DNA of 64,000 bases. It comes from Lepidodermella squamata. Taxonomy: Eukaryota; Animalia; Gastrotricha. The notes beneath the pieces were generated by a model. The model was not told the origin of the DNA, did not search any database, and saw only the letters and a list, made by a program, of their open reading frames with translations. Of the stretch, positions 3,356 through 37,284 are shown piece after piece; position 1 is the first letter of the stretch, and each line of letters opens with the position of its first letter. Position numbers and translations under genes: made by a program. Location of the stretch: assembly GCA_047495785.1 (NCBI GenBank), contig JBLDXI010000040.1, positions 248,001 to 312,000 on the forward strand, given 5' to 3'.

Positions 3356-3479
3356 TGGCCTCAAATATTGTTATTAATAACCGAAATACACTTGATCAAC
3401 ATATTGAGGCTTGGTGATATATGTTATCCATAAAATAAAAACAGTTGAGAAATTTAGTATTTTGATTCAGAATAGCCAA

Positions 3480-11183: not shown

Positions 11184-13290
11184 CAGGGGTTTATCCAGCT
11201 TTTTGTCTGAGGGGATGGGTTACAAAATTGAGGGGTTTTGGAGGTTGAAAATATGGCGCTCGCTCGCTACGCTCGCTCGCGGATAATCACTTTTTGCCCC
11301 TATATTTCTGTTATATTACATTATTTTATGAGAGAAATTACGCGCTATTTCACTTTTCTTCGTGTTGCGCGGCTTTTTATTCGAGTGTGCGGTGTGCGCG
11401 CTCAAATTTGTCGCTCAAAATGCGGCACGCAATACCGGTTACGCAACCAGCATTAGTGCGCGCGCTCATTATCGTAGTCACACGCTAAATTCGAATATGC
11501 AAATTAACATAACCGTGCTGTTTAAACTGTTTCGAGAAGGTCGACAAAAGAAAATAACTAAATTCATAGACTGCGGTGAGTTCTATTAAGGCTGCCGTTG
11601 AATATTAAATTTTCTGAGGTTAGTATCAACACCACTTCAGCTGCTGTCTATTAGTTTGCGCGGGAGCATATCCCTATTGGGTGCTTCTTTGATTTTGTTT
11701 ATCTCTGAAATAAATCGATTATTTGTCGGTTTATTTTTTACGCGATATTTTGGCATCGATCGTTATCAATTGCGTCATCAGCGACCACGTGGCAATCAAG
11801 CGACTGGTACTACGAGCTGTTTTATGAATGGAGTCGCCAAATTGTTCTACGCCTGGTTCAAAGTTATTCTACTCGATCTACGATCAAGAATCGCGGGATG
11901 CCATCATGGAATGCATTGGTTTTCAAGGCGCCAGGCGGGTGGTTAAAATCATCAACTCGATCTACTCGCATGTCAAAGATCATCCTGGAGAAGTCGACCT
12001 ACTGATAAGAATGTTGCAAGAAATGAATCTGTGTGGCAACGAGCTGATTCTGAACGCCCCTGTCTATGAAAGCGAGAAGCCACCAACTGGCGATATGGGT
12101 ACGCAGACCCAGCGGCAAATGGAGAACAAGGCAACCGAGACCGCGCCGGAAATTCAAACGACTCAGAAACCGACTAAGAAGTTTACACCGATCAAGCGAT
12201 CAAATGATTCGACCGTCATCGTGAATTTAAGACCCGAATGCGACAAGAAAATCCTTTGGTCAAGGATTGTCTCGGCCGTACCGGCAGCGAACATCAAGAG
12301 CTGCAGGCAAACATCTACAGGCATGCAGATTCGTCTCAATTCGAGCGAAGAAGCAGAAAAATTCAAGGCAATTGGGAATTTGGACGGGGTTCAATCCCTC
12401 GATACGATTAAGCGGAAGCACCGAATTGTTTTAAGAAATTTCGATAGCGACGCTGTTTCCGAGAATCAGTTAAAAACGGCATTCGGCGACAAGCTGATCA
12501 AGGTTATTGAATTACGAGGTAAGCAGTTGTTACTGGAACTGAGTGACTACGACTTGGCTGAGCGGTGTTTGAAGGACGGTTTCGCTATGAAGCCGTTCTT
12601 GTTACGATTCCGACCCTTCGTGATCAAAGCCCCTGATGTGGTTCAATGTTACCGCTGCCAGAATTTCGGCCACCTGGCGCGGGACTGCGTCGAAGAAGAA
12701 CGCTGTTTGCGATGCGGCCGTCAGCATAATGTGAAGGTTTGTCTGCGAGCGCCTCGTTGCTGCAACTGCGGCGGCGGGCACATGGCTAATGCTAAGGAAT
12801 GTCCGTCGCGTCGGCCTTCGGCTGGGTGATAGGATGCTGGCAGCAGTTGGGCCCCGGGTGGCGGCGCGTTTCGACGGCGGCCCGGGGCAGCAGGTAGCTG
12901 AGCTGGAGTGGTGGGCCTTTTAGGCTGAAGTAACCCCAATGGGGTTGTTGCGGAGTTAATGGTTAAACTGAACGTTCAATGTAAATCATAAACATTTCAT
13001 GTGGTTATAAGTGTGAGCAGCTTTTCATTTATTGCATGAAAGCTGTGTGTTGAAAATTGTAAAAATCTGTTAGATGTAATAGGACTACTATCAACTCGGT
13101 ACATCATACTTAGCCTGAGGGCTGATGGTGTTATTTTCTAACTAGATCTAATAAAGCAAGAGTTCCTCCGCCCCTACGGGATCAGTCATGAATCGCAAAA
13201 TACTATTACTGTCACTAAAAATTAGGGGATGACCGCTCGATTTGAGGGGATGTCCAGGGGATGGGTAGGGGATGGCTGGATAAATCTCTG
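11184..13290. mobile_element. Non-autonomous hAT-like element containing a gag-like ORF
   Basis: TIR CAGGGGTTTATCCAGC / GCTGGATAAATCTCTG (2 mismatches). 8-bp flanking duplication ATTATAAT at 11176-11183 and 13291-13298. GGGGATG subterminal repeats at both ends. Confidence 0.75.
11828..12829 (+). CDS. Gag-like LINE ORF1 protein with three CCHC zinc knuckles; no ORF2 downstream
   Basis: Intact 333-aa ORF ending QCYRCQNFGHLARDC-x4-CLRCGRQHNVKVC-x5-CCNCGGGHMANAKECP, typical of I/Jockey ORF1. Confidence 0.88.
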   Translation: MESPNCSTPGSKLFYSIYDQESRDAIMECIGFQGARRVVKIINSIYSHVKDHPGEVDLLIRMLQEMNLCGNELILNAPVYESEKPPTGDMGTQTQRQMENKATETAPEIQTTQKPTKKFTPIKRSNDSTVIVNLRPECDKKILWSRIVSAVPAANIKSCRQTSTGMQIRLNSSEEAEKFKAIGNLDGVQSLDTIKRKHRIVLRNFDSDAVSENQLKTAFGDKLIKVIELRGKQLLLELSDYDLAERCLKDGFAMKPFLLRFRPFVIKAPDVVQCYRCQNFGHLARDCVEEERCLRCGRQHNVKVCLRAPRCCNCGGGHMANAKECPSRRPSAG

Positions 13291-14099: not shown

Positions 14100-15915
14100 A
14101 GTTGGAGCGTGCAATAACAACAATCAAATATACAACAAAGAGCAGTGTAGATGTTGTGATAGATTGAACGTATGGAATGAAATTCTAACGGCGACCGACG
14201 TCATTGAAAGTTACAGGCGAGACGAAGGGACTTCACTAGCAGCTTTTCACCGCGAATACGATACGCACAAGACCTACTGAAGAGAAAGCAAAGGATAGAG
14301 GAAGAGGGAGAGGCGGCAAGATCAGACATCGAAAGTGGGCAAACGACCCCGAGGAAGCCTGCTGGCGATCAAGGCCAGCGGGGATCGGGACACCGGGTTC
14401 GCGGAGAGGGAGGACGAACCGGACTGCATTCGCAGCATAACGGCGCTGGGTCTGTTCGAAAAAGACAGGCAGGCTCTTCACGCCACAGCGGCGTTCCAGC
14501 TCCGAGACACGGACCCGGTCATTGCGGCGGATGTTTAGCAGGCTGCGCAGACAGTCGTTCTGCGACACATCAAGCCGCCTCAGCTGCCTCTTAGGCGCGG
14601 TACAAAACACGACGTTGCCGTAGGTGGCGGCGGAGCGGACAAGGCTGAGGTAGGCGGTGCGACGACATCGGCGAGAGAGGCCAGGGGTGCAGGCAATACG
14701 GCGAAAGTGGGACAGGTTCCGGGTGCAGCGGTTGATGACCTGGTCGACGTGCGACTTCCAAGTCAGCTTGGCGTCAAGGTGCACGCCGAGTACACGAATC
14801 ACGGCAACTTGAGGGATCATCGAGCCGTCGAGGTGCAGACGGGTCTGGTACGAGCGCCAGGCAAGCGGCATTGCCTCGCTTTTCGACGCATTAAACTTCT
14901 GGAGCCACTCGCGGGCCCACTGCGAGATGCGATCGATCTCTGCCTGGGTGCAGCGTTCGGCCTCCTGGAAATTCGCACCCTCGCCGACGACGGTTAGATC
15001 GTCAGCATAGGCGTCTAGGGAACAGCCGGGGGCATTCGGCGCAGTTAGAAGGTCAGCAGTGTACACGATGTACAGCAGGGGCGACAGGGGCGACCCTTGC
15101 GGGACCCCGCAGTTCACAGTCCGCTGCTAACTGAGGAAGCCGGCGACGCGCGCTTGAAGCTTCCGGTCTCGCAGGAAATCGGTCAGCCAGGCGGCCAGGT
15201 TTCGAGGTAGAGGCAGTTCGGCGAGTTTGAAGGCAAGGCCGGCACTCCACACGGAATCGTACGCCGCCTGTACGTCAAGGCCGACGACGATGACCTTACA
15301 GTTACGCGACCGGCCGAGGTGGACGCGGTGCGCGATTCGCAGCGGTACGTCCGGAGCGGATCGGTGAGCACGGAACGCGTACTGGTTGTCACCCGTATCA
15401 ACAATTTTCAGTATTCCGTAAGATGAAATATGTTAATGAGCACTTTTCATTTTTCAGTGCGTGAAATCACAATGAAAAGTGCTCATTAACATATTTCATC
15501 TTACGGAATACTGAAAATTGTTGGTACGGGCAGGCAGCAGGCTGAGATCCTCCAGGAACCCACCCAACCAACGCGCGATGATCGATTCGAGTAGCTTGCC
15601 GTCAACTGGGAGCAGCGAGATCGGCCGCTGAGACGAGATGGCGCCATGCGGTTTACCGGCTTTAGGCACAGGGAAGACGGCAGCCTCCTTCCATTCCGGC
15701 AGAACGCAGCGGGAGCCGAGGCTGAGGTTAAACAGATGGCGAAGGTGGCGCTGAAGCGGCGGCCCGCCCGATTTGTAGAATATAGGACTGATGCCGTCCA
15801 GCCCAGGCGCCTACTGGGAAGTCGACAGCGACTGAGGTCACGAAATGGTCACTGGTATATCGATCGCCAACGTGAGCGCCGCCGCGCAGAAGGCGCATGG
15901 CAGCGTCGTTAAGCA
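14100..15915 (-). mobile_element. 5'-truncated, degenerate non-LTR retrotransposon (I/Jockey group): RT domain and 3' UTR
   Basis: Motifs RPISLL, VGLDVQAAYDSVW, GVPQGSPLSPLLY, AYADDL and LGVHLDAKLTW. Contains a stop and frameshifts, and is interrupted by the MITE at 15392-15530. Confidence 0.92.
15392..15530. mobile_element. 139-bp fold-back MITE with CCC...GGG ends and a 2-bp TSD (CMC/CACTA-like)
   Basis: 60-bp arms at 15392-15451 and 15471-15530 (1 mismatch) around a 19-bp loop, with CA on both flanks. Removing it plus one CA restores the RT frame LLPDNQYAFR. Confidence 0.9.
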
Positions 15916-16392: not shown

Positions 16393-19243
16393 ATGCCTCC
16401 TAAAGGCAAACGGAAAGGTCAAGGCTTTACAAATAGGAAAGACCGACGCGCTACTGATAGAGAAGCTCGTCCTTATTATACGGCCAGGGTTTTAAAACGC
16501 CTTGCCCGCGAGGATGAGTCTGCCTCTGTCAACGGGCTGACACCTACACCAACACCTACGCCTCTTCCCGTCTCTCGCCCTGATTTACTTGAGCTGTGTG
16601 ACGCGGCTCTGAGTGACCGAGAAAACTTGTCGCTATCACTAATATCATCGACAGCTGAAACTCCAGGTTGCGGTTTCTTCGCGAGGCCGAAACGAAGCCG
16701 GTTAAAAAATTCAGGAAAATTTTGAAATATTGCGTTCTGATATTTTTAGATAAATTATCTCACTTAATCTCACTTCATAAATTTTAAATGATATTTCTGG
16801 GTTTCCAAAATTATTTTTCTAAATTTTTCAAAACTTGAAAATTGTTATAGCAATTTTGGTGAATTTTCCAAGTTCTATTTCGAATAATTTCTATTATGTT
16901 AACAGTTCCGCTCGGTGAAACCCTCAATTCCATCCCTCGATTTTGCTCGACCCCATTTCCCACGCCACCTCCAACATCGTTCGTCGATACTTTGGCTATT
17001 GTTGCCGATTTTGTTTCGCAAATGTCTTCTTTTGCCTATCCAGGTTAGTTTTTTCCCTTAAAAAATCAGCGCTACTTTTCTTGAATTTTCTTTAAATTTT
17101 TTAATTATTTAAATTTTTTATTATTTAAATTTTTTTTTAGTATCTCGCGTTGCGGAGCTTGAGGCAAAACTGACGCAATCCACCGTCGAAATTCAAGATT
17201 TAGAATTGAGGCTGGCTTCATCAACTGCCGAAATTGGTGCACTGAAGCAAGTCGTCTCAAATCTCGAGCCAGAAAATGCGGATTTTCGAGAAAAGTGCAA
17301 TGCCCTTGACAAAAACTTCGCAGAATTTCGTGTTCGCTACGAGTTGGAACGGCGTCGAACGATCAACAAAGTTAAAAATCTTCAAAAACGTGTGTCTAAG
17401 TACCGTTGCAAGGTGGCCAAAGCTGGCGAAGCACCGAAACCGGCCGTGATTCAACCACCTGAAAAGCCGAAACCTGTCCTTCACCCCAAGCTGACGATGA
17501 GTGGCAGCAATTTTTCGAAGAGCAACAACAGCTGCGCGGTAAAGATCCTAAGCACTACGGTTTAGTGACGAATTTGTTGCCTACGCGATGGCGCTTCAAT
17601 TACGAAGTCCCTCGGCTTACTACTATCTGTACGCTTCGAAAATGTTAATATTGCCGTCAGAGCGTTATCTACAGCGTCTTATACCCGTTGAGTATTGGGG
17701 CGGGCAGTCCGATGTTGCTTACAAGCTGCTTAAGGAAGAAGCTGAGATGAACGGCGACTTCAATAGCAAGAAAGGCCTCGTCATTTTGTCGTGCGATGAA
17801 GTCAGCGTTTCAAAGGCCTTGAAATCCACCCCAACCCGGGATGACCGAACTGTCGGAATGGCATTAGACGATCCGAATCAACGGGCTGAAAATATGCTCA
17901 GCTTTATGGCGACTTATCTTCAAACTGGCTTGCAAGTCAACATCGCCAATTACCCAGTCGCCAAAAAATGCGGCGCTGCATTTATGCACCAAGCTCGCGA
18001 AGATCGTCTTTACGACATCGGCTCGCGCGTCATTTGCACGGTCATGGATGGCGGTGGAACCAACTGGTCGTGGATCAACAGCGTGGGTGGCAAGTCGTTC
18101 AAGCATCCTTGCAACCCCGAGTGGGACATCTACATTTTAATCGATGTTCCCCATCTATTGAAATGTGCTCGAAATGACGTTCTCCACAAGCGGTTTATTA
18201 TGACAAACGGCGGCTGTGTCAGCTGGGATCTCATTCGAGCGCTATTCGATTGGGATAAAAAGCAGCAGTGGCGAATGATTCCTCGAGTCACTCGCCACCA
18301 CGTTCACACCATCTTTCTCAACGCTGCTTCGCCTCAAAAAATGCGAGTCGCCTACGCTGCACAAGTTTGCTCAAGATCGATGGCTCTAGCTATCATGGCC
18401 ATGTTCGGCCAAAGCGAGCGTAAATTCGACGCTGAAGCCACAGCCGAATTTTTCCATCTCTTTAATGACTGGTTCGATTGTTTGAACGGTTCTACCTACG
18501 AACGGGCGAAGGAGAACAGAAATCCAGCCCTTGAGCCCTACACATCTTGTGACGACCCTCGTCTCGCTTGGCTGGAGACTGAGTTTGTTAATCGACTAAC
18601 AGCATTGCAAATTGCAAGCCAGAAATCGCGAAAACAAACGTTTGATAACTCTGAAGGACGGCAGCCAGCGAAATTATAGCACGGCATTCAACGAGGCAAC
18701 CTTCAAGGGTTTCATTGTAACGTCGACAAATTTTCCAAAAGCAGCTCGATTATGTCTTCAATTGAACGTTCAGTTTGTGATGGCTAATCGATTTAACCAG
18801 GACGGTCTCGAACAGCTCTTTAGCCAATTTCGTCAATGCGGAGGCGGCAAAACTAACCCTTCAGTTTTTGACATTTTGGTCCGGTATTCGGCCCGGTATT
18901 CGGCATTCCTGGTGGCTCAAATGTGGGAGTGAAAAAACACATCGGCGGCATTCGGTTTAACACCACCATGCGTAAGCTGAAGAAGGAAGCGGTTGCAAAA
19001 ATCAAAGCTGCTAATTTGCTCAAAGTTGGCCTTCCAGCCGACCTTGGTCGTAATCCGCTGTCCTTGTCGTACATGGCCGGTTTCATCACACGCCGCCTTG
19101 GACTAAGCACAGACTCAGCTAACATCGAGTGGGACGAGTGGGTCGCCCAGTGCAGCCGCGGCGGTCTCGTTCATCCGCATTTCCACGTCAAGAGTATTTT
19201 GACCGCAATTTGCCACCTCAACGAAGGCGTTCTCCAGCCGTAG
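16393..19243 (+). pseudogene. P-element/THAP9-like DDE transposase, spliced N-terminus, frameshifted
   Basis: Motifs SPSAYYYL, ILSCDEV, TVMDGGGTN, IDVPHLLKCARN, QKMRVAYAAQV, NDWFDCLNG, NQDGLEQLFSQFR, YMAG and SRGGL. Exons 16393-16666, 16906-17043 and from 17141 splice in frame. Frameshifts near 17500, 18620 and 18920. Confidence 0.9.
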
Positions 19244-22768: not shown

Positions 22769-23593
22769 TTAATCCGAGTTGGAGCTTGAGCTGGAGTCTT
22801 GAGACTTGGAGTCCTCATCGCTTGAGACGGAGCCGTTGCGCTGACCGCCACAGGGCTGCATGTCGTCCCGTGCGATATCGGCTTCTGCTGACCAAGGCGT
22901 CTGGTACTCCGGCTCCACCTCCAGGTCGCGGAAATTCTCCGCTTGATTTTTACGGTGCTCCAACAATCTGCTTAGCTGCGGCCAGAGTTCTGCAGTTAGT
23001 GTCACACGATTGTCACCTGATTGAATCCCGATAACAGCCGAATCGGCATAGACTGGAGAGCCAGGGGAGCCGAAAAGCGTCTGCGTCTTGTAAAAACAAT
23101 GAGGATTATCAACCCTGTCAATCAAGACGGAAGAAACATGAAAGGCCGAGCTCATCGAATGTTCCGCGTCAGTATAGCAGCCGATCACATCGACGGCTTG
23201 GTTTTCCTTAGGAACGGCGTCCTCGCTAATCGGGTCAAACAATGGGCAAGCCGTCAAGCCCAGGTTTCTCACTTGTTTCCACGCCTTCTTTCCCAATTCG
23301 ACGACGGTGACACCGAGATTTTGGAAGTCGTGAAAGAATCGGCCATCTATGCCGATTTCCTTTTCAACTTTCGCCGGCTTCTTAAGGCCACGGTAAAATG
23401 TGACGACAAATATATTGCCCTCTTCAAGGAGTATCGGCGCATTACCGCGACCAATATCGTCATTGCTCGCAATGAGGTATTTCTTGTAGTCAATCTCTAC
23501 AAGGTAACAAGCGGCCATAGATCGATTTGCTGGAGAAATGGTCCCGATCGCATGCTTAGCGTACGGCGAACTGTGCAGTCTCTGAGCTTGCAT
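22769..23593 (-). CDS. Trypsin-like (Trypsin_2/FAM111-like) pseudo-protease, paralog A; catalytic triad lost
   Basis: Intronless 274 aa, colinear with paralogs C and D. NYHV becomes SNDD, DLDV becomes NLGV, and GSSG becomes GSPG. Confidence 0.8.
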   Translation of the reverse strand: MQAQRLHSSPYAKHAIGTISPANRSMAACYLVEIDYKKYLIASNDDIGRGNAPILLEEGNIFVVTFYRGLKKPAKVEKEIGIDGRFFHDFQNLGVTVVELGKKAWKQVRNLGLTACPLFDPISEDAVPKENQAVDVIGCYTDAEHSMSSAFHVSSVLIDRVDNPHCFYKTQTLFGSPGSPVYADSAVIGIQSGDNRVTLTAELWPQLSRLLEHRKNQAENFRDLEVEPEYQTPWSAEADIARDDMQPCGGQRNGSVSSDEDSKSQDSSSSSNSD

Positions 23594-24477
23594 AGTTGGA
23601 ATTTTGGGCTCAATTAATGAAATTCTAGAATGGAAAGTGACACAATTGCCTAATTAGTTACCGCATGATATTCGCTGACTACTCAACTCGAATAATTGGC
23701 ATTGACCTAGGTAGTAACCTAGGATTTAAGAAGCCAATCCGTAGGAAAATAACCAAATTTGTACGGCGAGTAAATAACCATAACCCTGATAAAACCTAGT
23801 GAGAGGTCGCAAATCGAGTTGTCAACCAGAAAAATCATGATGCTGGTGATAAGAAATTATTAGCCGTAGGATTCGATGGAAATGCTTTACCATAATTATG
23901 GCTTGATTATAGTGGTAAATGGTGCTTTAATAATATTATTATAATTGTAATATTTACCGCGGGGTCGTAATATTAGAAGGTACTATAAATATTAGCGGTG
24001 TGATAAAAGGAAGAACAAGGACCACCACTAGACCACTAGATATTGTTTAGCAAACAACTAGCAACGCCAAAAGTCAAACAACCCAACTACGAGTTATCTT
24101 TTTTTATAACACAGTATATTTCGTAGTACGAGGCCCAGCTCCCGTCTCCTGTTGTCGTGGGGCGTGTTCCGTTCCGTCGCGAGTGAATAATAACGTGAAT
24201 ACCTCCGCACGTTTTTATGCTCGTCGAGGGCAAGGATTCTTGTTGACAACTCACCCGTATCCGATAAAACTGCTGTCTAATCTCGGCGCAGTTTTATTTT
24301 GCAGCTCATATCAACGGCGACGTCAGCCGCGGCAATGTTTATTTTATTTGGTGTGGCCAACCACTCGTTCACACCGAAAACCCACGATTGGTTTATTAGC
24401 AAAAAAAGGTTTGCACCCAGCCTAGGTACGAATGAGCTGATCGAGCAGCGACAACGTACTCACAGACCGCCGCACTT

Positions 24478-26156
24478 CATGAGACGTATAATAGGACGCC
24501 GCGGCTTGCAGAAAATCATAAAAAGCGTGCTATTTCTAATAGTCCAAAGTCCAATCAATGAATCATCTAATTACATTTTTGCAATCATCCAGTGTTTTTT
24601 TTAAGGAAAAGTTCGGTGTTTACCCAAAACAGTTCGGTGTTTACACCTATGAGCCTTATATGTACCGGAATTTTTGGGTATAAAACTGCGGGTAATTTAT
24701 ACCGAAAGTAGCTTTGCCTCAGTGACTTTGATTTGATTTGATTTGATTTCTTCAGTAAATCGCGGGTCTTGTTAAATCAATCATTTCAAATCAAATCGAC
24801 GAAAAATCCATGGTAAATCAATCAAATCAAATCATCCAAACAGTCTAAATCAAATCAAATCAAATCATCCGCATAGAAAACCTATATTATTACGGTAAAT
24901 TTCGGAGAATTGTTTCACATTTTAAGGTTGACTTTGGCAGGGTAACTTTAAAAGGGGTATAACGGCTCCAGTCTTAGCAATCCTTAAAACGGAAAGAGGT
25001 GTTTCAACGCAAATGCGGAAACGGAAAGTTCTCATGATAGGTAAAAGAGGGAATTCCAAGAGTTTTGAATACTCTAATTCAGCGTAAATCATGGGGGCTA
25101 AATCATTTGCAAATCAAATCATCGTAAAAACTTTGTAAATCAATCATCAGTAAATCAAATCAAATCACAATCAAATCAAATCAAATCAAAGTCTCTGCTT
25201 TGCCTTCTGTCTACAACTATTAGAAGCAGCGGCTGAAATCATGGGACAACTAAATTTTCGAATTTGCGAGCGAAGCGAGCTTAAATTTCGATTTCATGCT
25301 GGAATTGGTGCTGAGAATAGCCTAAAATTGCTTCAAAATAACGATGATATTTCTAAATAAGTTAATGAAAGCATCGCAGTTCATACTTCAGGCGAGATGA
25401 TACTTCGTAGGAATGATTGCTCAATTTCTTCACCATCAAATTCGAAGTAGCGGTGTAGTACCAACAACTGCGTAAGGTGAAGACCGCAGTCGAAGACGCG
25501 AGAAACGAATACACATATGTAGGAGTCAAAAGTGCGAGCGAAGCGAGGAGAAAAATTTACCGTAAACTACAGTATAAAGGCCGCACTCGAATAATCCCCG
25601 CAAAAACACCCCATTTTAAAATATTTGGCAATAATAAAGGCCGCGCGCGAATAATCGCCGCACTCCTTAATAGCGATTAGCAGTCACCCTCAATGAGACA
25701 CCTGGGGTGACTCCCGAGTAGACGGATTATCCGCACTTCTTAGCGAATATGTAAACTCATTGCGCTAGCTGCAGATCTTGATTACAGTAAAATCCGCCCT
25801 CTGGCGCACCTGTTACACCCGTTAGTAGTGAATAAACTGCTAGTTCAGCGTGACGGCTGAAAATTCAAGATAATAAAGGCCGCACTCGAATAATCGCCGC
25901 ACCTGTATAATCGCCGAATTTTTCATCCCTTTCTGAAAAATCAGGAAAATTAATTGTAACGTTAAAAATGCATGAGATGAAAGAGTTAGCAAGTTTCCAG
26001 ACCAAGGTGCTTTACAGGCGCGAGCAGGTTTCGGATTTCGGTGTTTACATCGCCAGTTTCCGGTGTTTCCGGTGTTTACGGCCGGGTAGCAACCGAGCGG
26101 TCATGTAATAGGAGCTTCGAAGCCGCGGCGTCCTTTACATAGTACGTCTCATGATG
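24478..26156 (-). mobile_element. Second non-autonomous P-like element, inverted relative to 4264-7833
   Basis: Ends CATGAGACGTA... at 24478 and ...TACGTCTCATG(ATG) at 26153-26156. 8-bp duplication CCGCACTT at 24470-24477 and 26157-26164. Confidence 0.8.
24720..25197. mobile_element. hAT-like MITE rich in AAATC/GATTT pentamers, nested in the P-like element
   Basis: TIR CAG(T/A)GACTTTGATTTGATTTGATTTGATT. 8-bp TSD CTTTGCCT at 24712-24719 and 25198-25205. Confidence 0.88.
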
Positions 26157-26407
26157 CCGCACTTTACTTTCTTTCATACCTGATCATTGTATTCAGGGTG
26201 ATGATGGATTACATGTACGGACTGGATATCGATGTGTCGGTGCGGGTTTTTGAAGATCGGTGGCACTGTAGAATTCCAGGGGTTGCCCTGTTCTATGGCA
26301 CGAAGGCTTAGATTTGGGACTTTTCTACCGACTCGGCCCGGACCTACACCACTTCTTTTTATTGTTCAGTTTTAAGTATAGGATAAGCCATTGAGGTCAT
26401 ACATAGG

Positions 26408-26645
26408 TCATACATCGATGTCGTGTGAGCCAAAGAACAATCGGCCATGCTTGCATATTTTCACTGTCACTTTGTTAGGCCCCAGACGGTGCTGGTGAAT
26501 TGAGATGTTAAATTTGCTGCCCTTTCCAAGCAGTATGGGCGCTTTATCGCCGCCGATTACGTGGTAGTTGTTCAGGAGGCAAGTCTTGGGTTCGATCACA
26601 CCAATTAAACCAGTCGCAGTAAATTTACTGCCTGGAATTTGACAT
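26408..26645 (-). pseudogene. Truncated trypsin-like protease, paralog B
   Basis: CQIPGSKFTATGLIGVIEPKTCLLNNYHVIGG...GRLFFGSHDIDV* is highly similar to the N-terminal half of paralog D; the rest is missing. Confidence 0.85.
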
Positions 26646-27349
26646 AATCGGAGATGCGCGTAAAACGTCCTTCGAACGACTTCAAAGGCTTCAAGACCGA
26701 GTGGTCCGCATAGTTATGAGTGTGCCTTTTTCCGCAGCCGCAGATCCTCTTCGCGGAAGCAACTAGGCTGGCTAGACCTTGTTCGAACTTCCAAGTTGAC
26801 CTTCAAAGTTCCCTAATTCCGCATCGACTACAGCAAAGCCAGTCTCAGCGGGCCAGTGTTTTTCAACACCCTGCCAGTCCACTTCCATTGCTCACAAAAT
26901 CGGCCAGTCGATATCAGCACCTACAACGGCAGCTTTCCGACCTGCTAATGTGGAATCAAGGCCTGCGCCACCGCCAATGACTGCAGACAGCTTGTATTAT
27001 AGACATTTACTTTGTTGTTGATTATTTTATACTAATTCATCTCACTTTGTTTTGACCAATAACGAAACGGAACAGACTCTGCACACTTTTTTGATACTGA
27101 CACCTAATTTTTCAAGTCTAGCTCTCAACAATGGGATCCAATGTCATTGAATAGATAAATAAATAAATAAATTACAACCGTTTTCCGTTCATTCATTGAA
27201 AGGTTTACGGCTAATTTAAATCGCGTGCTGTGCTGGAAATGCATGCTTTTCTTGTTATTAAATCGCAAAATATTTCGTTATTTTTACCATTCAATCAATA
27301 AAATTCTGCTAGTTCATTTTCTTTTGGAGGTTTCACACCTTGATCAGTG

Positions 27350-30073
27350 ATGGCAGTGCGCCTTATTACGCTTGTGTTGGCTTGCTCATATCTCCACCCT
27401 GTCTCCTCACTCTCAGAGAGAGCTGAAAACGTCACCTTTGCCATTTTTAACGGTGACGTCGTCTCAACCGTAATAACAACGACCATGTACCCTTACTCTT
27501 ATGACGGCTTCGTCCCGGGCCAACCGCCGGCGAAACCGTGGCCGTTGCCGATACCTTACGCATTAAATAACAACACCTGGAAACGCGGCAGTTGCAGCGT
27601 CCCATCAGATTGCCGCGATGCATCTTTGTGTGAGTTGACGAGTGACTCATGAAATGTCCTTTGTTTATGATGTTAATATTCACGTGGCAGCCGAGGTCGA
27701 TACTGCCGTTATCAGGCAAGCAATAGCTCAACTCGAATCAGTCACCTGTTTGCGGTTCGAGGAGCGACCTTCCATCAACGTGAATACGTCAAACTCGATT
27801 ATTTTCTTACAATATGGGTGAGTTGCTGTGTTGCAGCTTGGAAATTCATCATGAGTCTCTTTTTCAATCAGGAACTCCCAAGGTTATCATAGCGTTGATT
27901 ATCCTGCAAAGCTCGTTGCTATCGGGAATTCTTACGGCATCCAAGATTCAAGCTTCGCGGTTAGTTTCCTACTTAACACTAGAAACAAAAATCAGCTATG
28001 GCTTCGAATCAGGTTCAATTTGCGATTAGAAAAATTGGCTACGTCCTAGGGCTGACGTATGAGCTCAGAAGGCCAGATCGTGATCAATATCTCACAGCCT
28101 ACCCTGGCTCCGAGAACAGGTTTGATTCATGACTTATTTCGGCTACTTAGATTTCTGCATTCTTCCGAATAGCTACCCTGTAAATACGGCGCAAACGTAC
28201 TACAACTCGACTCCGTTTGACTACGAGTCGCTCTTCAATCCTATTATGAATATGGTGGGCGATCTGAAGGTGGGCGAGAGGTACCCACCCGACCGGCGAT
28301 ACGTGACAAGCTTGGGACAGTCTAGCCACCTGTCACTGCTCGACATGGTGAAGTTGAACACGCTCTACAACTGCTTCAGTGAGTTTAAGCGGCTGCGAAG
28401 AAACGCTGTTAATCAAACGTCTTTTTTTAGATTCTGATCCTTGCAAGAACCCAACGATCACATGCCAAAATAGTGGCTACCCTAATCCGAGCGTGAACTG
28501 TACAAAATGCTTCTGCCCTGTTGGTCTTGCTGGCGATTTTTGCGAAATCCCATACCCGACCGATACAGCGAACGGCTGTGGCGGCGAAATCTACGTTGAG
28601 CCTTGTACTACGGTTGACATATCAACACCCACAGTTGGCACAACGAATTCGACTCGTTGCTCGTGGCGTGTAACAACGGTTTGTAAATGATTTCCCTTAT
28701 CGATTTCCTGCACGTTTCCTTTCCTTTTTCAGGGTGTTACGAGTGGATTGATCTTCGCGTTTCCAACTTGGCTCTTTCTGGAATATCATGGTGGGCGAAT
28801 CTATGCTAATCTGAGAATATCTGTCTAATAACTTTATTCTTAGGATCTGTAAATTGCATGAACTTCGTCCTCATAAGAGGCTTGGGGCTGGAGAGCAGAG
28901 TTCCCGGATTTATGTGAGTGACGAAATTAGCCTTGAAATGGCTACAAATTTTTCCTCCGTTTAGATTTTGCAGTGTCGCTAATATGAACGGGCGTGTTTT
29001 TGTAACCAACAACAATCAAGCTTTGTTCTACTCAGGCATAGTGTACCCGGAAGCGGGCGAACGCGGCCGTGTGACTGTCTTCGCAACTTGTCCCGGCGTT
29101 AAAGCGACCGAGTTGAGTAAGGAATGCCGAATCACGCCAGTGGCAAGTGACTATGAAGGATCGCTCATTTCCAAGACTGCAACTGGTGCAACCTGCTCGC
29201 GCTGGTCCGAAGATTCCGGGCTGCGCTACATGTATATACCGAGAGGCGATTTTAATGCCTCTGGAAATGCATGTCGCAATCTCTATTTTTCTTCTTTAAA
29301 ATGCTGGAGTAACGGTGGAATTACCGACTGCGAGAATTACGACAAAATTAAAAGCTGCAGTGAGTCATTTTACTTTGAATGCAATTTAGCTCTATATCGA
29401 ATCCCCCTTTCTTAATTTAATGGCTTAATAGCTCAATTGGCTTCGCGTTGCATCAACTCGGAAACTGGCCAGTTCGAAGCGTGCAGGCGGTACTGCTTGG
29501 TTGGGGAAACTGCTTTTAAGGAATGGACAACTCGTTTCATGGACACCTGCAGTAAGGGCGTGAGTTAAAATAATCTAATCCAATCTAGCCAAATTAGCGC
29601 TGTTTGTGTTGTAGAACGCCAAGAAATGCGTCAAAGGCTCGACTTTTCGTTGTATCGCTGGCGACCAAGGCTGTGCCACCGGTGAGAGTAAAATCGTGAG
29701 CTATAGAAAAATTGGGAAATTTCGGCAAGAATTCTGCAATCTACTTCTTTAGATGTTCAACACCTACGCCTTCTTCGGCCGTAATTTACTAGCGTGTAAT
29801 CATCGAGCTGATCTCAATTGGGTTTGTTTCGGTCGGAATAATGCTGATAATATCGTTGATAAATCATTGCGTATAGAAATACATCCGCTGTTACCGCAAC
29901 ACGCCAGGCAAGCCGTTCGCAGACTGCCGACGTTCAGATTTCGGATGCAAACCGACTGAGGTTGGTCATAATTCTCCGCTTTTTAAGCCTGAAAAAACTC
30001 CTCTGCTCCTTAACAGGTTTCGGATGCAACGCCGACGTTTACGGATCCTTTCAAATGCTACGAGGGCATGTAG
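27350..30073 (+). CDS. Secreted astacin-like (M12A) pseudo-metalloprotease with EGF, CUB, kringle-like and Cys-rich domains; multi-exon
   Basis: Signal peptide MAVRLITLVLACSYL; astacin landmarks WPLPIPY, TCLRFEER, RPDRDQY, FDYESL and LSLLDMVKLNTLYNC. EGF CQNSGYPNP..CFCPVGLAGDFCE; CUB CGGEI..CSWRV; kringle-like YEG..SKTATGATCSRW..NACRN. Last exon 30017-30073. Confidence 0.85.
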
Positions 30074-30623
30074 CTGTCACTCAAAACTCTCTAGTTTGAA
30101 TTTGGAACATCATAACTCATTCTTTTGATCTGTTTCTGCTTTATGGAATATTAATATACTAGTTTTTTCTTCACGGCAAATCTGTTGCCGGTAATGTTGA
30201 TCAGCCAAGTGGACGGTCTATTTTTCCTTAAAATAAAATGCGTAACAGCCATACTTTTTCTATATTGCCACGGAGTGCGATAAATTAATTTCTTGATTCC
30301 ACCTGCTTCTATCAGCTCAACACATTTTTTATCGCAAAACAACCGATTAACCGAGAAGGGGCACAGGAATCGGCCGAAAGCGGGGCGTTAAGATCGCGAA
30401 TTAGAGGCTCGGCGAAACTTGCCGTACTCGATTTACTCTCCATTCGTCTCCGAGACTCTTTCCTATTCGTAAATCTCGGCCGGCTCCGTTCAGTCATAGA
30501 CTTTTTACTTGTGCTATAGCCTCAGAATAAAAAATATCAATTCAGATAACAAATCATATAATATCAGAGTAGACTTCTGCAAGTTTTTCAACATTGGCAT
30601 GCCGGGCGAACTCTTTCACTTGA

Positions 30624-31730
30624 TTAGTTTTGTTTATAAAAAATCACACCCGCTAACCCCACCAACCCCGCCACCGCAACCGACCCAGCAAAATATAGAC
30701 TGACTTTGAGGCCGGTCCTGCTTTCGCCACTCTTGCGCGTCAGCGGAGGGGTATTTGCGAACCACTGGTTTATTCGAAATTCGAAGTCTGACTCTGAGTC
30801 GGACGATTTTTGAAGATTTTGCTCCTGCTGCTCGTTAGTATTCGTAAGATTGTACTGCGGTGAGAAATCAACATCTCCGAATCTCCCGTTACCATCCTGA
30901 AACTCCGAGTTCGGTATCTCGCTCAAGATTGGTTCCATTATTCCGACAACAATCTGACCAACATAGACTAGACTGCCTGTGGAGATATCATCTTTACGCC
31001 CGGCCGTCCTTATATCTTTTTTCACACGTTCCAAGATTGCTTCAATTAGCGTTGCTCGATTGACGCCAGTATTGTCCCCGACATAGCCGGAATGAATGGC
31101 AACAACATCAGAAACTTGACCATCAGAGAGTTGACTGCCTGAGGAACCGACATCCGTTTGCCCCGTGTAAAAAACGAACGGATGCTGGACTTCAACAATT
31201 GTGCCTGTAATAACAAAGCTGCTTCCAAAGCCGAACATTTTTAGTAGATAATACAAGAAGCTCGCACGCGAAGGTTCCACGCGAGGATAGCCGATCACAT
31301 CGACAACTGCGTTCACATTAGGAATGGCGGCCCGGCTTCCTGGGCGAGCCAATGGGCAATCGGTAATGCCCAGCTTATTCAGTCGTTTCTCCCAATTCTC
31401 CCCCAATTCGATGACAGTAGCATCGATGTCGGGATAGCCGAAGTAGAATCGGCCATGCCTGCCGATTTTCACTGTTGTCTTGTTAGGTCCCAGAAGTTGT
31501 GGGTGAAAGGCGATGGCGAATTTATTGCCCCTCTCAAGCGGCATGGCCTTTTCGCCGCCGCCGATTACGTGGTAGTTCGCCATGAGCCATGCCTTGTCGT
31601 AAGTCACAACAATGAAACCAGTCGCAGTAGATCCATCGGGTAAAATGATTTGTCCGCTCGCATGCATAGAGTACGGCGAATCACGTTGTAATATTTCAGG
31701 CTCTGATCCAGCGGTGCATCGCGGTTGCAT
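30624..31730 (-). CDS. Trypsin-like serine protease, paralog C, with a C-terminal tail anchor
   Basis: Intronless 368 aa with no signal peptide. Triad ANYHVIG, DIDATVIEL, TDVGSSG. C-terminus SLYFAGSVAVAGLVGLAGVIFYKQN. Confidence 0.88.
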   Translation of the reverse strand: MQPRCTAGSEPEILQRDSPYSMHASGQIILPDGSTATGFIVVTYDKAWLMANYHVIGGGEKAMPLERGNKFAIAFHPQLLGPNKTTVKIGRHGRFYFGYPDIDATVIELGENWEKRLNKLGITDCPLARPGSRAAIPNVNAVVDVIGYPRVEPSRASFLYYLLKMFGFGSSFVITGTIVEVQHPFVFYTGQTDVGSSGSQLSDGQVSDVVAIHSGYVGDNTGVNRATLIEAILERVKKDIRTAGRKDDISTGSLVYVGQIVVGIMEPILSEIPNSEFQDGNGRFGDVDFSPQYNLTNTNEQQEQNLQKSSDSESDFEFRINQWFANTPPLTRKSGESRTGLKVSLYFAGSVAVAGLVGLAGVIFYKQN

Positions 31731-32991
31731 TTCCTCCTGAATCGTTTAGTTTATGTTTGCTGGTTTTGAACAAAACTGTAGAATCTAAACGAGGAGACTG
31801 GCATTAGTTTAAATGCAGAGGAGACTGCATTTCACAAAGCACTCAATCTTTCTACATTTACTGAAAAAAAGAATACTCGAGTGGGGAGAGGTGGGGGGAG
31901 TAGGGAGGCTGAACTCAAAAAGCACTACATAATCGAGCTATTTATTTGATTTTATTTGCATGCAAAAAAATTGTTCAAAGCTAAAGCAGAAGAATGCGGG
32001 CAAAACATTGGTTTTCTGCTCTAGAAAATCAGGAAAAATGGCAATTTCAGGGCATGAGGGTTACAAAATTCCGTAATTTTTCCTTGATTTTACAAGTACG
32101 GTGCATGATTTGTTTAATTTTGGACACTTGTGGGGTAATTTTGGAGACCTCATTAGCATATTCATAATCAGATGCGTGCAGAACTTTAAGGGTTACTTGA
32201 AAGTCCGAAAAAAAATTCGGAATGGCCCCACGGCGTCAACTAGTGCTGGTAAATTTTTTCGAAAAATCGGCTTTCAGGTTGACAGGGAATGAGGGGGTCC
32301 CAAATGGACGTTTTGAGGCATCGAAGCTTTTTATTTATAATAAAAACAGGTACATTTCAGACCACCTTTAATTTAGTACCGTTGGAAAGCCCGTCTTTCT
32401 AGGCAACTTGCAATTTTAATGGGAATTTTTTCAACCTCACTGATAGAACACACTTACGTGTGGAAGTTGTTCTGTCCATTTTCTTAATACGAGGCAGATT
32501 ACCATCGAATTCGAAAATATGAGCAGCGTTAGTAGTCATCTAATACTGAGTGAATACTAATGTAGTCATAGTAAAAAATGATAATGATAAGAAGTTGAAG
32601 GTGTAAAATTAAGTTGAATAAACTATACATATTAATCCTGTAATATTTTTTATGTTTAATCATTGGAAACCTATAATAATAGACGGATTCATGGCAATGA
32701 ATTATGCTGCAGTCTGTGACGATGAAAAACTTACATAGCCTTAATGCTCACGTTTCTTCAACTACTTGTGATTGTGGAAAGCGTCTTGCCGGAATGCTTA
32801 GCTTACATTTTGTTTGAATAAAAAAATATAAAAAGTAGTTCGGATTAAGTGCAGCGTCGTTGGCGGTAAATATGAGAAAAAAATTAAACAAGCCTTCTGC
32901 GGCGCTGACAACAATTTGGCAGCATAAGGATGTACAATTGTAATGGAAGACTTTAACAGGCGTTGATTAGCAAAGTTTGGGCACCTACGCT

Positions 32992-33474
32992 CATACGGGC
33001 GCCGTCGTTCACAAATTCGAAAAACTGAGAAATTTTCAACATAATGGTTGCCCCCTTAAAAATTACGATTTCGCAATAAAAAACACAACCCAGTAGGTAA
33101 TCGATGACGCTCTGCACACTGGTTACCGATTTTTCTCTCAATTAGCTAATCGTAACCGGCAATTAGCGAAAAATGAAAATATTTGAATCGAAGTGTTTAT
33201 CAACTCATTTCTAGGGTTAAAAAAATCGCTGATTCCGAAAATCATATTTTCAACTAAAAATTCGGCAATTTAATTTTTTTCATGTCATTTAGGCCCAATT
33301 TTCGACGAGTTAGACATGTAATAAAAATCTGGAAAATTCACCAAAATGTGCGGCTCAAAAAGTTGCTACAAAGACCTGTTTTCATCGTTCTAGAATGATT
33401 TTTAAGGATGGTGACCATTGTCTCAAATGACAAAAATTTTGTGAAAAACATTTGTGAACGACGGCGCACGTATG
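32992..33474. mobile_element. About 480-bp MITE
   Basis: 25-bp TIR CATACG(G/T)GCGCCGTCGTTCACAAAT at 32992-33016 and 33450-33474. TSD is either the flanking CT or the internal TA. Confidence 0.75.
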
Positions 33475-34353
33475 CTTGAGAGGTTTACAGATTTATCTGC
33501 GCTGCGGAAGCAATACAAATTGGCCTTTAACTTCCATGAGGCGACCCAATTTGCGACTGGGCTATTATAGGAAAACGAATGCGGTATTCCATTTAAAAAA
33601 ATTTGTGTTGTGTATAACTCTATACTACTTTATTGAGAAAATGAAACGAACATGATAAACGGAGTTCCCAAGGCTTAAAATTTACAATTCGAATCTAAGT
33701 CGAACAAGTGAATACTTACGAATCAGTTATCATATGAGAATCACAATATTGTTCTTAGTCATTGCGCCGATGCTATCGGGCACATTCTCACACTTTGCCA
33801 TCCGCAAACACCTCCCTGAGCCGCTTGGTAGCCACGGAAATCGCGAAGCGCGTTCTTCGGTCTGGGAAAACACCAAAGAACCGGGCTGAATTGTGATCTC
33901 GGGTCAAGAGGTAAAGATAACAAGCTTAAGTCGAAAGATGTCGAGCCATTTGACAAAGGCAATTTTCGTTGAAAACCGAAACGAAAAATGAAGTTCGAGA
34001 ATCGCGAAGCATAATATTTCGCAGGAGATCACAAACATGCAGATCCGAGACACGGCAATGCTCGAATTCACGGGATCGTTGCCATTCAAAAATGTTGCGA
34101 AATCCAGCGAGTTGTCGACGTTGAGTCGACCAGAGACTTCCCCTATCAACGCTTGACCGCCGTAAACGAAGAGATGCGTAGCCATAAACAGTGACTGAGC
34201 CGTCAGCCGTCACCAAGGCGAAACCATACCGGCATAGCTTTGGCGCCGCGAATCATGCAGCCAAGCTGCACAACTTCTGAGAAGGAATCCCGAGGAGGAA
34301 TCCAAGTAGCCGAGAATAGAGAAACAGGCCAATTTCAGGCCCAAAAGGTTTTT

Positions 34354-35319
34354 TTACATTATTCGACAGTCGAAGCCCGAGTTTGAGTTGGACGCTTCGG
34401 ACTTGGTTTTCTCCCACACTGAGATTGAGCTTGACCCCGAGTCGGGTGAATCGAGTTCCGCGTCCTCAATTGACATATTATCCTGCGAGATATCAGCGTC
34501 CGCATACATCCCGGGAACAGTCGAGAATTCCGAGTAAGGTATGTCACTCAAATCCAATCCAACCCTTCCAATCGCCCGCAAGCGATCCTCGCGGATTTTC
34601 TTAAGCAGCGCGGCCCTTTTTTCTTGATTCTCCCTCATTGGCCTTCTCACACCCTCCCAGATTGCTTCGAACAGCGTCGCGAAGTTGTAACCAACATTGG
34701 CATTGTAGCCGCAATGGACCCCGACAACGACCGAGCCAACGTAGACTGGGCCGCCTGATGAGCCCGCATGCGTTTGCGCCGTGTACAAAACAGTTGGATA
34801 ATCAACTTCGCCAATTGTTCCGCTAGAAATACGACTGACCAACCTCGCATGCGAAGGCTTTATGTAAGGATAGCCGACCACGTCGACGGCTGCGCTAACA
34901 ATAGGAATGGCGGCCCGGCTTCCAGGGCGAGCCAAAGGGCAATGGGTGATGCCCAGCCTTTGCAGTAATTTCCACTTTTTCTCGCCCAATTCGATGACAG
35001 TGACATCGAGATCGCGTAAACCGAAGAAGAATCGGCCATGCTTCCCGATTTTCACTGTCACTTTGTTAGGTCCCAGAAGGTGTTGGTGAAATGAGATGGT
35101 AAATTTACTGCCCTTTCCAAGCGCTATGGGCGCTCCATCGCCGCCAATTACGTGGTAATTGGTCAGAAGGTAAGTCTTGGGTTCAATCACAACAATGAAA
35201 CCAGTCGCGGTAAATTTACTGCCTGGAATTTGACAAATCGCATGATCAGACCACGGTGAACCACGTTCTAATGGTTCGGCTTCTGAGCCAGCGTTGCATC
35301 GTGGTTGCTCACTTGCCAT
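34354..35319 (-). CDS. Trypsin-like serine protease, paralog D, with a C-terminal CaaX-like box
   Basis: ATG at 35319 (MASEQPRC). Triad LTNYHVIG, DLDVTVIEL, THAGSSGGPV, followed by VVGVHCG. Ends CRIM-stop. Confidence 0.88.
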   Translation of the reverse strand: MASEQPRCNAGSEAEPLERGSPWSDHAICQIPGSKFTATGFIVVIEPKTYLLTNYHVIGGDGAPIALGKGSKFTISFHQHLLGPNKVTVKIGKHGRFFFGLRDLDVTVIELGEKKWKLLQRLGITHCPLARPGSRAAIPIVSAAVDVVGYPYIKPSHARLVSRISSGTIGEVDYPTVLYTAQTHAGSSGGPVYVGSVVVGVHCGYNANVGYNFATLFEAIWEGVRRPMRENQEKRAALLKKIREDRLRAIGRVGLDLSDIPYSEFSTVPGMYADADISQDNMSIEDAELDSPDSGSSSISVWEKTKSEASNSNSGFDCRIM

Positions 35320-36018
35320 TTCAGGTTCAATGAAAAGTTTAAAAATAAAATTCACAACGATAAGCAAGTCTTCGTTAGGTGTAGAAGTGGATAATTTTTC
35401 CTATTTTATCAACGTGTAAGCCGTGGTGACTCATCGCTCGTCGACACGAAGTTCTGCCGCAAGTGAAAGATCGTGGTCTAGTGCCCAAGGCAACGCGGTC
35501 GAATGAGGCGTGTTATATTCAGCTCAATCTGTGTGAGCCACACAAAAGATCTCCGGGACATCCATTGATGATCAGACACTCATGATTCTATAAAGGTCAC
35601 TATAGCTGGCGACGTAATAAGCGAGAAACCGAAAATAATATGGAAGCAGTAAGGATTTTTCGACAACCCCTGTTTCACATACTTCTTCATTCATTTTTTG
35701 CGGCTTTTTTTGCTATGATTCATCTTTAATAAAACTTTATATACACGACGCATTTTACGACGTTATACAGTGATTTAAACGTTCGCGTGTATACAAACTT
35801 CATGAGTATTTCTAAAAAACTAGCTGAAACTTACACCCATTGCTACATTATAGCGTGGTAAAGCTATACATACCCAATGTAACACTCGGTGCGTGAATCA
35901 TTCAAGCTGTTAGAAGATCGATCATGCAAAAATGGGGTTCGAAAATCATATATTTATTACTGATCCAAAGTTCCCATCCTTACTACTTATTGATTTCATG
36001 TTATTCAATGGGGCTGCT

Positions 36019-37284
36019 TCACAAAACTGCCAGCTCAGATTGTAACCAGGTATGTGGGCATGAATCGATAAAGTTTATGCGACGTAGGTGCGAATTCAAA
36101 GCAGCCGGTCTTTCACTGAAATCAGACCAGTCGAACTGAAATTGAGCTGGATCAATCGTGGTATTCCGTTGAGGAAATTCTGAATCACAATATTCAGGCC
36201 TATATTGTGATTCAGCCATCGAGTAGCAAATTCCTCTTCTCAGGACCAATGTCAAATTATCGCCTAATTTTTCGTGTTGGTACGTCCAATGGACCGTGAC
36301 ATGAGGCTCAACGGCCAAATGCTTTGCCGGATCAATACCAGCCTCTTTGAATCCAGAAACTTGGCCTAGAATAACGCCCGACCAGCCAGGTTGCTCCTCG
36401 GCAATAATCCAATAATATTCATTCCGCAGCTCGTTCCACATGATTGCACACATAATGCTAAACTCGCTGTAATCATCGAGTTCAATGAGCCGTTGAAATA
36501 ATTCGTCAAAGCTCGAAAAGTTTCGAAATCTCTGGCCGACTTTGATCATTCTTTCCCGAAATAATTTCAGATGAGCTGTTTTCAGCACCACAGGGAAATA
36601 GGACATGCAGTTGAAGGGCTCTGAAAATGAAGTGAAAATATTGTGAAATTTCTGGAAATTTAACCAACCTTTATAGCCGCTAAATTGATATGTTTTAAGA
36701 GGAGAGGTTCGCCAGTATAACGAGTCATCCTTTGGTTTCCCGAAAACCGGTCTAACAATCGGTTTCCCATCGCGAAATAAGTCGTAAAGTGTGACTCTCG
36801 ATATGAAAACTGCATCCGTATCGGCCATCGCGATAAATTCCGATTTTGTGAAGTTATCGATCCAAAACTTCATCCACTGCGATTTATGCCAACCATAAGA
36901 ATCACGAGGACCAGTTATCGGCCCGACTAAGTCAAGGTTGAACTCAATCGATTGCCCCAAAGCTTGCAGAGTGGTTTTCTCGAACTCATCAGCGTAATAG
37001 CTTGCATTTTCTCGTTCAGAATCGGACAAAATTCGTAATTTAAGGGCGTTCCTAGGCCAAAATATGGCCAAGGACCGAAGGAAGTAATCGCGGTATTCAA
37101 CGAAACTTTCCTCAGCCGAACCAGCAGGTACAATAATTTCAATGTCAGGCCATGGGTGAAGGATATTCAAGCAATTATCTCGGTTCTCGCTTGGAAGAAA
37201 TGATTGATAAAATAAATACAGTAGAATGGAACATAGCCAAAGGATTAATGCAAAAAATCTTTGCTTTTTGCATATTTTCAGCAT
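36019..37284 (-). CDS. Type II membrane GT-A-fold glycosyltransferase-like protein
   Basis: N-terminal TM (FFALILWLCSILLYLFY) and DXD motif (KFWIDNFTKSEFIAMADTDAVF). Probable 48-nt in-frame GT-AG intron at 36668-36621. Confidence 0.7.
   Translation of the reverse strand: MLKICKKQRFFALILWLCSILLYLFYQSFLPSENRDNCLNILHPWPDIEIIVPAGSAEESFVEYRDYFLRSLAIFWPRNALKLRILSDSERENASYYADEFEKTTLQALGQSIEFNLDLVGPITGPRDSYGWHKSQWMKFWIDNFTKSEFIAMADTDAVFISRVTLYDLFRDGKPIVRPVFGKPKDDSLYWRTSPLKTYQFSGYKGWLNFQKFHNIFTSFSEPFNCMSYFPVVLKTAHLKLFRERMIKVGQRFRNFSSFDELFQRLIELDDYSEFSIMCAIMWNELRNEYYWIIAEEQPGWSGVILGQVSGFKEAGIDPAKHLAVEPHVTVHWTYQHEKLGDNLTLVLRRGICYSMAESQYRPEYCDSEFPQRNTTIDPAQFQFDWSDFSERPAALNSHLRRINFIDSCPHTWLQSELAVL

Follow-up and report, generated by a model that had tools for sequence, protein, structure and literature searches.

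How should trypsin-fold genes that lack a signal peptide be read in an animal genome? Serine proteases of the chymotrypsin fold are overwhelmingly secreted in animals, and the few intracellular ones (HtrA2, FAM111 and TYSND1) are targeted otherwise than the proteins described here. We addressed this question for a protease gene cluster of the gastrotrich Lepidodermella squamata, which lies in a 64-kb stretch of contig JBLDXI010000040.1 (assembly GCA_047495785.1, positions 248,001 to 312,000 of the forward strand). This whole stretch is called the window in the following, and all positions refer to it. The family was located via open reading frames (ORFs), tblastn and a scan of the six-frame translation with a family profile. 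The cluster consists of three intact single-exon ORFs on the minus strand, termed A, C and D, and a fragment termed B, which together lie within 12.5 kb. In our view, which we hold with a probability of roughly 60%, these genes represent an apparently lineage-restricted tandem family of cytosol-facing, membrane-anchored Trypsin_2 proteases that are nearest to the S1B/sobemovirus group, with C and D as active enzymes and A as a pseudoprotease.

Fold and position within the clan

The protease domain was recognised most directly in D, which matched Pfam Trypsin_2 (PF13365, clan PA serine peptidases) with 38.5 bits (E 2.4e-9) at a gathering cutoff of 27.6 bits. A had no Pfam match and C stayed below the cutoff; both are counted as family members because they are homologous to D (tblastn E 1e-40 for A and 1e-72 for C). 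The first-pass annotation, a reading of the sequence that preceded our analysis, had assigned all paralogs to the Trypsin_2 type. By Pfam this applies to D, and C and A are linked to it by tblastn.

AlphaFold models of D and C were built with remote relatives in the alignment. The predicted local distance difference test (pLDDT) was ~90 over residues ~11-255 of D, and the C model reached a similar confidence (pLDDT ~90) up to about residue 245. Both models displayed a two-barrel chymotrypsin fold followed by a long helix (residues 217-252 in D) and then by disorder. In D, the part behind this helix is a disordered, acidic and Ser-rich linker. C carries an insertion of 13 alignment columns in its second barrel, and behind the domain a disordered linker leads to a further helix at the C-terminus.

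Foldseek searches of the PDB yielded at least 500 matches at E<=0.001, and the 50 best ones listed were all chymotrypsin-fold proteases. The top ranks were held by V8 protease, SplA-D, Esp, Bacillus glutamyl endopeptidase and the Ryegrass mottle virus (RGMoV) protease, with HtrA and DegS further down. Barnavirus and sobemo-like proteases were the best matches in the viral structure library. Moreover, sequence and profile searches of the PDB retrieved SplB, V8, SplC and the sesbania mosaic virus (SeMV) protease 1zyo. Given these Foldseek, viral-library and PDB results, we assign the domain to that branch of the clan which is compact and acid-specific and comprises the S1B glutamyl endopeptidases and the sobemovirus proteases, and not to HtrA/FAM111.

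The likeness to HtrA and FAM111 that had been proposed earlier was rejected. Searching the PDB with the profile returned neither HtrA nor FAM111 at E<=1, FAM111 chains were likewise absent from the PDB sequence search at this threshold, and Pfam detected no PDZ or UBL domain in A, C or D. HtrA/DegP and FAM111A/B do share with the family the Pfam domain Trypsin_2, and they too are not digestive enzymes but work within the cell or a compartment. However, HtrA carries one or two C-terminal PDZ domains, whereas the tail of the proteins described here is predicted to be disordered. In FAM111 the protease is C-terminal and follows UBL and PIP regions, whereas here it starts ~25 residues from the N-terminus, a distinction that was made without a direct FAM111 alignment.

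The S1B enzymes, i.e. staphylococcal V8/GluV8, SplA-F and Esp as well as Bacillus glutamyl endopeptidase, resemble the family in their two-barrel fold and His/Asp/Ser triad, and they gave the best fold and sequence matches. A Thr at -5 and a His after the Ser motif, which belong to an acid-specific S1 pocket, are also common to both. In contrast to the family described here, S1B enzymes are secreted, have signal and pro-peptides and need a processed N-terminus for activity. Compared with them, our family adds a conserved N-terminal lead of ~25 residues, a C-terminal helix, a long linker and a membrane anchor, and the identity is ~20%.

Active site and predicted cleavage preference

D possesses the triad His56, Asp105 and Ser188 together with the pocket residues Thr183, His202 and Asn212. 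The corresponding triad in C is His54, Asp103 and Ser197, and C shares the pocket residues T183 and H202 of D in the alignment. In D numbering, Thr183, Gly186, Ser187, Ser188, Pro191, His202 and Asn212 are each at least 90% conserved across 50-54 aligned sequences. C and D are predicted to be catalytically active. A triad made up of the motifs NYHV, DxD and GSSG had been described for the paralogs in general; it is present in C and D, but A has lost all three residues and only the His and Asp motifs are found in B.

The pocket signature consists of TxxGxSG, in which the Thr takes position -5 relative to the catalytic Ser, together with a His at +14 and an Asn at +24, and it is at least 90% conserved across 50 remote relatives. 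This spacing equals that of T279/S284/H298/N308 in SeMV. Mutation analysis assigned T279, H298 and N308 of SeMV to a glutamate-binding S1 pocket, and TxxGxSG is the sobemoviral consensus (PMC4488728). Since the spacing of the pocket residues matches that in SeMV, we infer a preference for cleavage after Glu or Gln at P1, based on the motif and not on model coordinates.

Gene starts, C-terminal ends and predicted topology

The hydropathy analysis showed no N-terminal hydrophobic segment in any of the copies, in agreement with the first-pass annotation. The start Met is located at homologous positions in A, C and D, and each of the three ATGs is preceded by an in-frame stop, at distances of 6, 21 and 28 codons. 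The loci cease to resemble each other in nucleotide sequence near the ATG, and they have no shared acceptor site.

As already suspected, the three intact copies end differently. The sole hydrophobic segment of C spans residues 345-365 of 368 (Kyte-Doolittle 19-residue mean 2.05), and the model contains a C-terminal helix at ~342-367, with 3-4 residues beyond. Tail-anchored proteins have no signal peptide and one transmembrane helix within ~30-40 residues of the C-terminus; judged by its sequence, C would be such a protein. CaaX boxes have Cys at -4, an aliphatic residue at -2 and a last residue that decides on the transferase. D terminates in C-R-I-M-stop, which would suit the form CxIM known from farnesylated lamins and K-Ras. 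The tail of A is rich in Ser and Asp. Homology between the tails extends up to the anchors, as seen from ...SGFDCRIM in D, ...SDFEFRIN... in C and ...NSEFECYF beyond the stop of A, which lies just upstream of this relic of the FDC/FEF tail motif. When D was read through its stop, a weak likeness to the start of the C helix appeared. An ancestral tail-anchor may thus have been cut back twice.

Both anchors, the tail-anchor helix of C and the CaaX box of D, are predicted to place the protease on the cytosolic face of membranes. The protein would be made in the cytosol from a single exon and without a signal peptide, and the long disordered acidic linker together with the C-terminal anchor would hold the protease domain at the membrane. 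The anchor would be the helix in C and the farnesylation-type CaaX box in D. Speculatively, the caspase-type DxxD sites (DVD/DAD) and the Glu sites in the linker could serve as processing sites. In the literature we found no description of tail-anchored or farnesylated/prenylated trypsin-fold proteases.

Contig cover was examined over C and D (30000-35999) in two runs, X1 and X2, which both consist of assembled contigs. None of the runs recorded as RNA contained the stretch. Run X2 covered the region fairly evenly, as expected for DNA. Run X1, whose RNA type is only guessed, covered C and sequence downstream of it as well as D between ~33600 and 35400. Immediately upstream of the ATGs, at 31800-31999 and 35400-35799, there was no or almost no cover, and neither splice joints nor loose ends were detected upstream of C and D in this run. 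The X1 cover fits single-exon transcripts of C and D, although it is not proof of them. Apart from this, the depth of X2 contigs reached 3,100-3,900 in the intergenic part at 33000-33400, compared with ~100 elsewhere, with many joints; this is probably a high-copy repeat.

Gene turnover, selection and the dead copy A

In tblastn comparisons C and D were 46-47% identical, and A was 33-41% identical to C and D. The motif SP(Y/W)xxHA, previously noted in the three full-length copies, occurs in all of them according to our alignment. The acidic motif LS(E/D)IP(N/Y)SEF, which had likewise been ascribed to all three, was found in C and D. Fragment B is 71% identical to D at the amino-acid level and 87% at the nucleotide level; a start codon is missing, the His and Asp motifs are retained, and a stop follows right after the latter. 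The four intronless paralogs on one strand that had been reported are hence three intact ORFs and one fragment. In addition, we found a fifth relic ~19 kb from the cluster, in which the catalytic Ser is changed to Asn and which contains an internal stop. It adjoins a reverse-transcriptase fragment with a YADD motif. Both B and the fifth relic are dead remnants of gene turnover. Tandem copies, fragments and different anchors support the earlier proposal of birth-and-death evolution with varied membrane targeting, and the cluster is a tandem, fast-evolving family.

Selection was analysed with Nei-Gojobori distances, a three-taxon split and bootstrap intervals, a comparison that the first-pass annotation had suggested. 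For C versus D, dN/dS was 0.57 (bootstrap 0.42-0.79) at a dS of ~0.5. The two genes evolve fast yet are constrained, which corresponds to weak purifying selection. The branch leading to A had a dS of ~0.47 and a dN/dS of ~0.8 (bootstrap 0.56-1.12).

In A all three triad columns are substituted (His by Asp, Asp by Gly and Ser by Pro), and the His of the S1 pocket is replaced by Gln. Nevertheless, its frame of 274 codons is open. In a neutral simulation, which considered substitutions and left indels uncounted, a frame of this length remained open in ~1% of the runs when 0.2 substitutions per site were applied, and in ~0.1% with 0.4. With moderate confidence, we regard A as a retained soluble pseudoprotease rather than a fresh pseudogene, possibly kept for substrate binding or for regulation. 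Fragment B had been considered the only dead copy and a potential decoy. A is dead as well, and B is a startless, truncated piece, so that the candidate for a dead regulator is A.

Distant relatives

A word-indexed search with D among 5.8 billion proteins gave no match. When 1.84 billion protein representatives were searched exhaustively with the profile, 137 proteins were detected at E<=0.001. As the best of these matches reached only E=1.8e-10, the family is an orphan without close relatives in the databases searched, and there is no one-to-one orthology with a housekeeping protease among these representatives. Compared with proteins of annelids, molluscs and arthropods, the RabGAP encoded nearby reaches no more than 42-45% identity. 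Therefore, the protein database holds no close relative of the host.

Most of the 137 matches were proteins rich in K, N and I that came from metagenomes or run assemblies and probably belong to protists. Many of these K/N-rich relatives start with Met-Gly, as in N-myristoylation, and some carry UBA/ubiquilin-like or UCH tails. A cnidarian subset (Montipora foliosa XP_068688278.1 and Sanderia malayensis) comprises proteins of ~345 amino acids in which a Trypsin_2 domain without signal peptide is combined with a C-terminal Death domain; we found no description of such cnidarian protease-Death-domain proteins in the literature. One bacterial match was a fusion of EAD11 with Trypsin_2. This agrees with trypsin-like peptidases recurring as effector or signalling domains in bacterial conflict systems (PMC8195603). 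Scans of metagenome contigs and viral contigs with the family profile revealed no relative.

The cnidarian and the K/N-rich Met-Gly proteins are the nearest sequence relatives found. Like our family they lack a signal peptide and begin with the Trypsin_2 domain, behind which a tail for targeting or adaptor functions is attached. However, the similarity is limited to E values of 1e-10 to 1e-5 and 20-25% identity, and they use Death, UBA/ubiquilin-like or UCH tails or N-terminal acylation instead of a tail-anchor or CaaX box.

Weighing the explanations

Several points speak against the interpretation as membrane-anchored proteases. The match of C to Trypsin_2 (17.7 bits) is under the threshold. 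The CaaX reading concerns one C-terminus, and for neither anchor were orthologs available. Run X1 consists of short contigs and is only guessed to be RNA, so that transcription and the 5' ends are unproven. A dN/dS of 0.57 between C and D is high for an enzyme, and the value for the A branch is indistinguishable from neutral drift. Finally, the P1 specificity is deduced from motif spacing.

Among the other explanations, we consider an innate-immune or cell-death module unlikely. By analogy, the proteases would be latent effectors or transducers, anchored at organelle or plasma membranes, that are switched on by infection or damage, perhaps through cleavage of the linker, with A as a decoy or inhibitor. 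Tandem birth-and-death evolution with a high dN/dS would be in line with this, but fast evolution and pseudogenes would suit relaxed constraint equally well. The open frame of the dead copy A is also compatible with the module. The remote relatives, which include the cnidarian Trypsin_2-Death and the bacterial EAD11-Trypsin_2 proteins, and the recurrence of trypsin-like effectors in bacterial conflict systems (PMC8195603) would fit such a module too. However, the similarity to the Death proteins (E ~1e-5) is no higher than to generic Trypsin_2 proteins, and Pfam detected neither Death, TIR or NACHT domains nor immune adaptor domains of any other kind in A, C and D.

Another explanation is a domesticated or relic viral protease, derived from the 3C-like protease of a sobemo/barna-like RNA virus or from a mobile element, that was integrated and then duplicated. 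We regard this as improbable. The proteases of sobemoviruses and barnaviruses (MEROPS S39; SeMV and RGMoV) were the top matches in the viral library, and among the top PDB matches the RGMoV protease had the highest target-normalised TM score (0.78). TxxGxSG and the Glu pocket, with the spacing of T279, H298 and N308, are shared by the family and the sobemoviruses (PMC4488728), but the same pocket motif is found in cellular V8-type enzymes, and the distance between His and Asp is 48 residues here versus 32-35 in the sobemoviral consensus (PMC4488728). The genes are intronless, the window contains retroelement and transposase genes, and the fifth relic lies next to a reverse-transcriptase fragment, all of which would suit integration. 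However, sobemoviral enzymes are embedded in polyproteins, where an N-terminal membrane anchor precedes and VPg follows them, whereas A, C and D are stand-alone genes and the anchors of C and D are C-terminal. No RdRp, VPg, capsid or polyprotein context was seen nearby, and among the large ORFs of the window no viral gene was noticed. Moreover, D matched Peptidase_S39 with 12.8 bits (E=0.09; cutoff 21), compared with E 2.4e-9 for Trypsin_2, the top sequence matches were short proteins of cellular type and not polyproteins, and viral contigs contained no relative.

Equally improbable in our assessment is a decaying cluster with little or no function, whose open frames would be recent survivors. 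Two of five copies are fragments and another one is without all catalytic residues, dN/dS ranges from 0.5 to 0.8, and an ortholog is not known. Against this, dN/dS between C and D is significantly below 1, and the triad and pocket have stayed intact in both genes across a dS of ~0.5. A frame of the length of A is rarely open under neutrality at divergences such as the dS of its branch, and the contig cover is consistent with C and D being transcribed. Ordinary secreted proteases with a missed signal-peptide exon, an idea suggested by the secretion of the closest solved relatives (the bacterial V8, Spl and Esp), are very improbable given the homologous start Met of three paralogs with in-frame stops close upstream and no shared acceptor site, the absence of X1 cover or joints upstream, and a tail-anchor and CaaX box that make sense only in a cytosolic protein.

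Features of the window

The coordinates of the family members and of the other features are listed in Table 1. The content of the window is that of an animal genome, with genes for a Cys-loop receptor, a class C G protein-coupled receptor, an ankyrin protein and RabGAP as well as retroelements. Between B and C lies a multi-exon gene for an astacin-type metalloprotease, in which the ORF translations revealed an EGF-like and probably a CUB-like part. The single-exon ORF directly upstream of D encodes an N-terminal hydrophobic segment and has a weak, sub-threshold match to DUF6492 (E=6e-4). Mobile-element genes are present upstream of the cluster, and three long ORFs on its other side had no Pfam match at E<=0.001.

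Table 1. Positions of the protease family members and of further features within the 64-kb window
Feature	Position	Strand	Description	Source
Fifth relic	3399-3623	-	Stretch from Ser motif to pocket His, decayed	tblastn E=0.001; profile match E=0.003
Reverse-transcriptase fragment	3966-4223	-	Adjoins the fifth relic	
Gag-like ORF	11828-12829	+	Zinc knuckle	
Reverse-transcriptase fragment	14236-15117	-		
Transposase	17588-18679	+	TNP-like	
Paralog A	22769-23593	-	Intact ORF of 274 aa, triad lost, no membrane anchor	ORF list, tblastn, alignment
Fragment B	26408-26698	-	~96 N-terminal codons, startless pseudogene	tblastn, alignment, profile scan
Astacin-type gene	27347-29415	+	Multi-exon	ORF translations
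Paralog C	30624-31730	-	368 aa, single exon, triad intact, C-terminal hydrophobic helix	ORF, tblastn, alignment, hydropathy, model
C-terminal helix of C	~30630-30707	-		Model
AATAAA signal	33629-33634	-	720 nt downstream of the D stop; X1 cover of D ends there	
Paralog D	34354-35319	-	321 aa from ATG, single exon, triad intact, CRIM-stop	ORF, Pfam, AlphaFold model, Foldseek
CaaX codons of D	34357-34368	-		
ORF upstream of D	36019-37284	-	421 aa, single exon	
Long ORF	46929-49556	+	875 aa	
Long ORF	50078-51637	-	519 aa	
Long ORF	57629-58990	-	453 aa	

Significance

If the interpretation as membrane-anchored cytosolic proteases is true, tethering by a tail-anchor or a prenyl group on the cytosolic face, combined with the predicted Glu/Gln specificity, would be a new layout in intracellular proteolysis, and one that comes with a natural dead paralog. 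The genes are short, lack introns and can be expressed easily, so that the system lends itself to testing. A bolder idea, to which we give rather little credence, is a so far unseen animal protease switch. Such enzymes would be specific for Glu or Gln, use interchangeable anchors on the cytosolic face of different membranes and be released or activated by cleavage of the acidic linker, and the soluble dead paralog would restrain them or mimic substrates, possibly in cell-autonomous defence or cell death.

In eukaryotes, Trypsin_2 proteases that have no signal peptide are repeatedly combined with targeting or adaptor tails, with Death domains in cnidarians and with ubiquitin-related tails or a Met-Gly start in proteins that are probably from protists. 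The latter set suggests that the anchoring of cytosolic trypsin-fold proteases may be more widespread. Should the link to immunity hold true, it would extend the known parallel between animal defence and the trypsin-type effectors of bacterial conflict.

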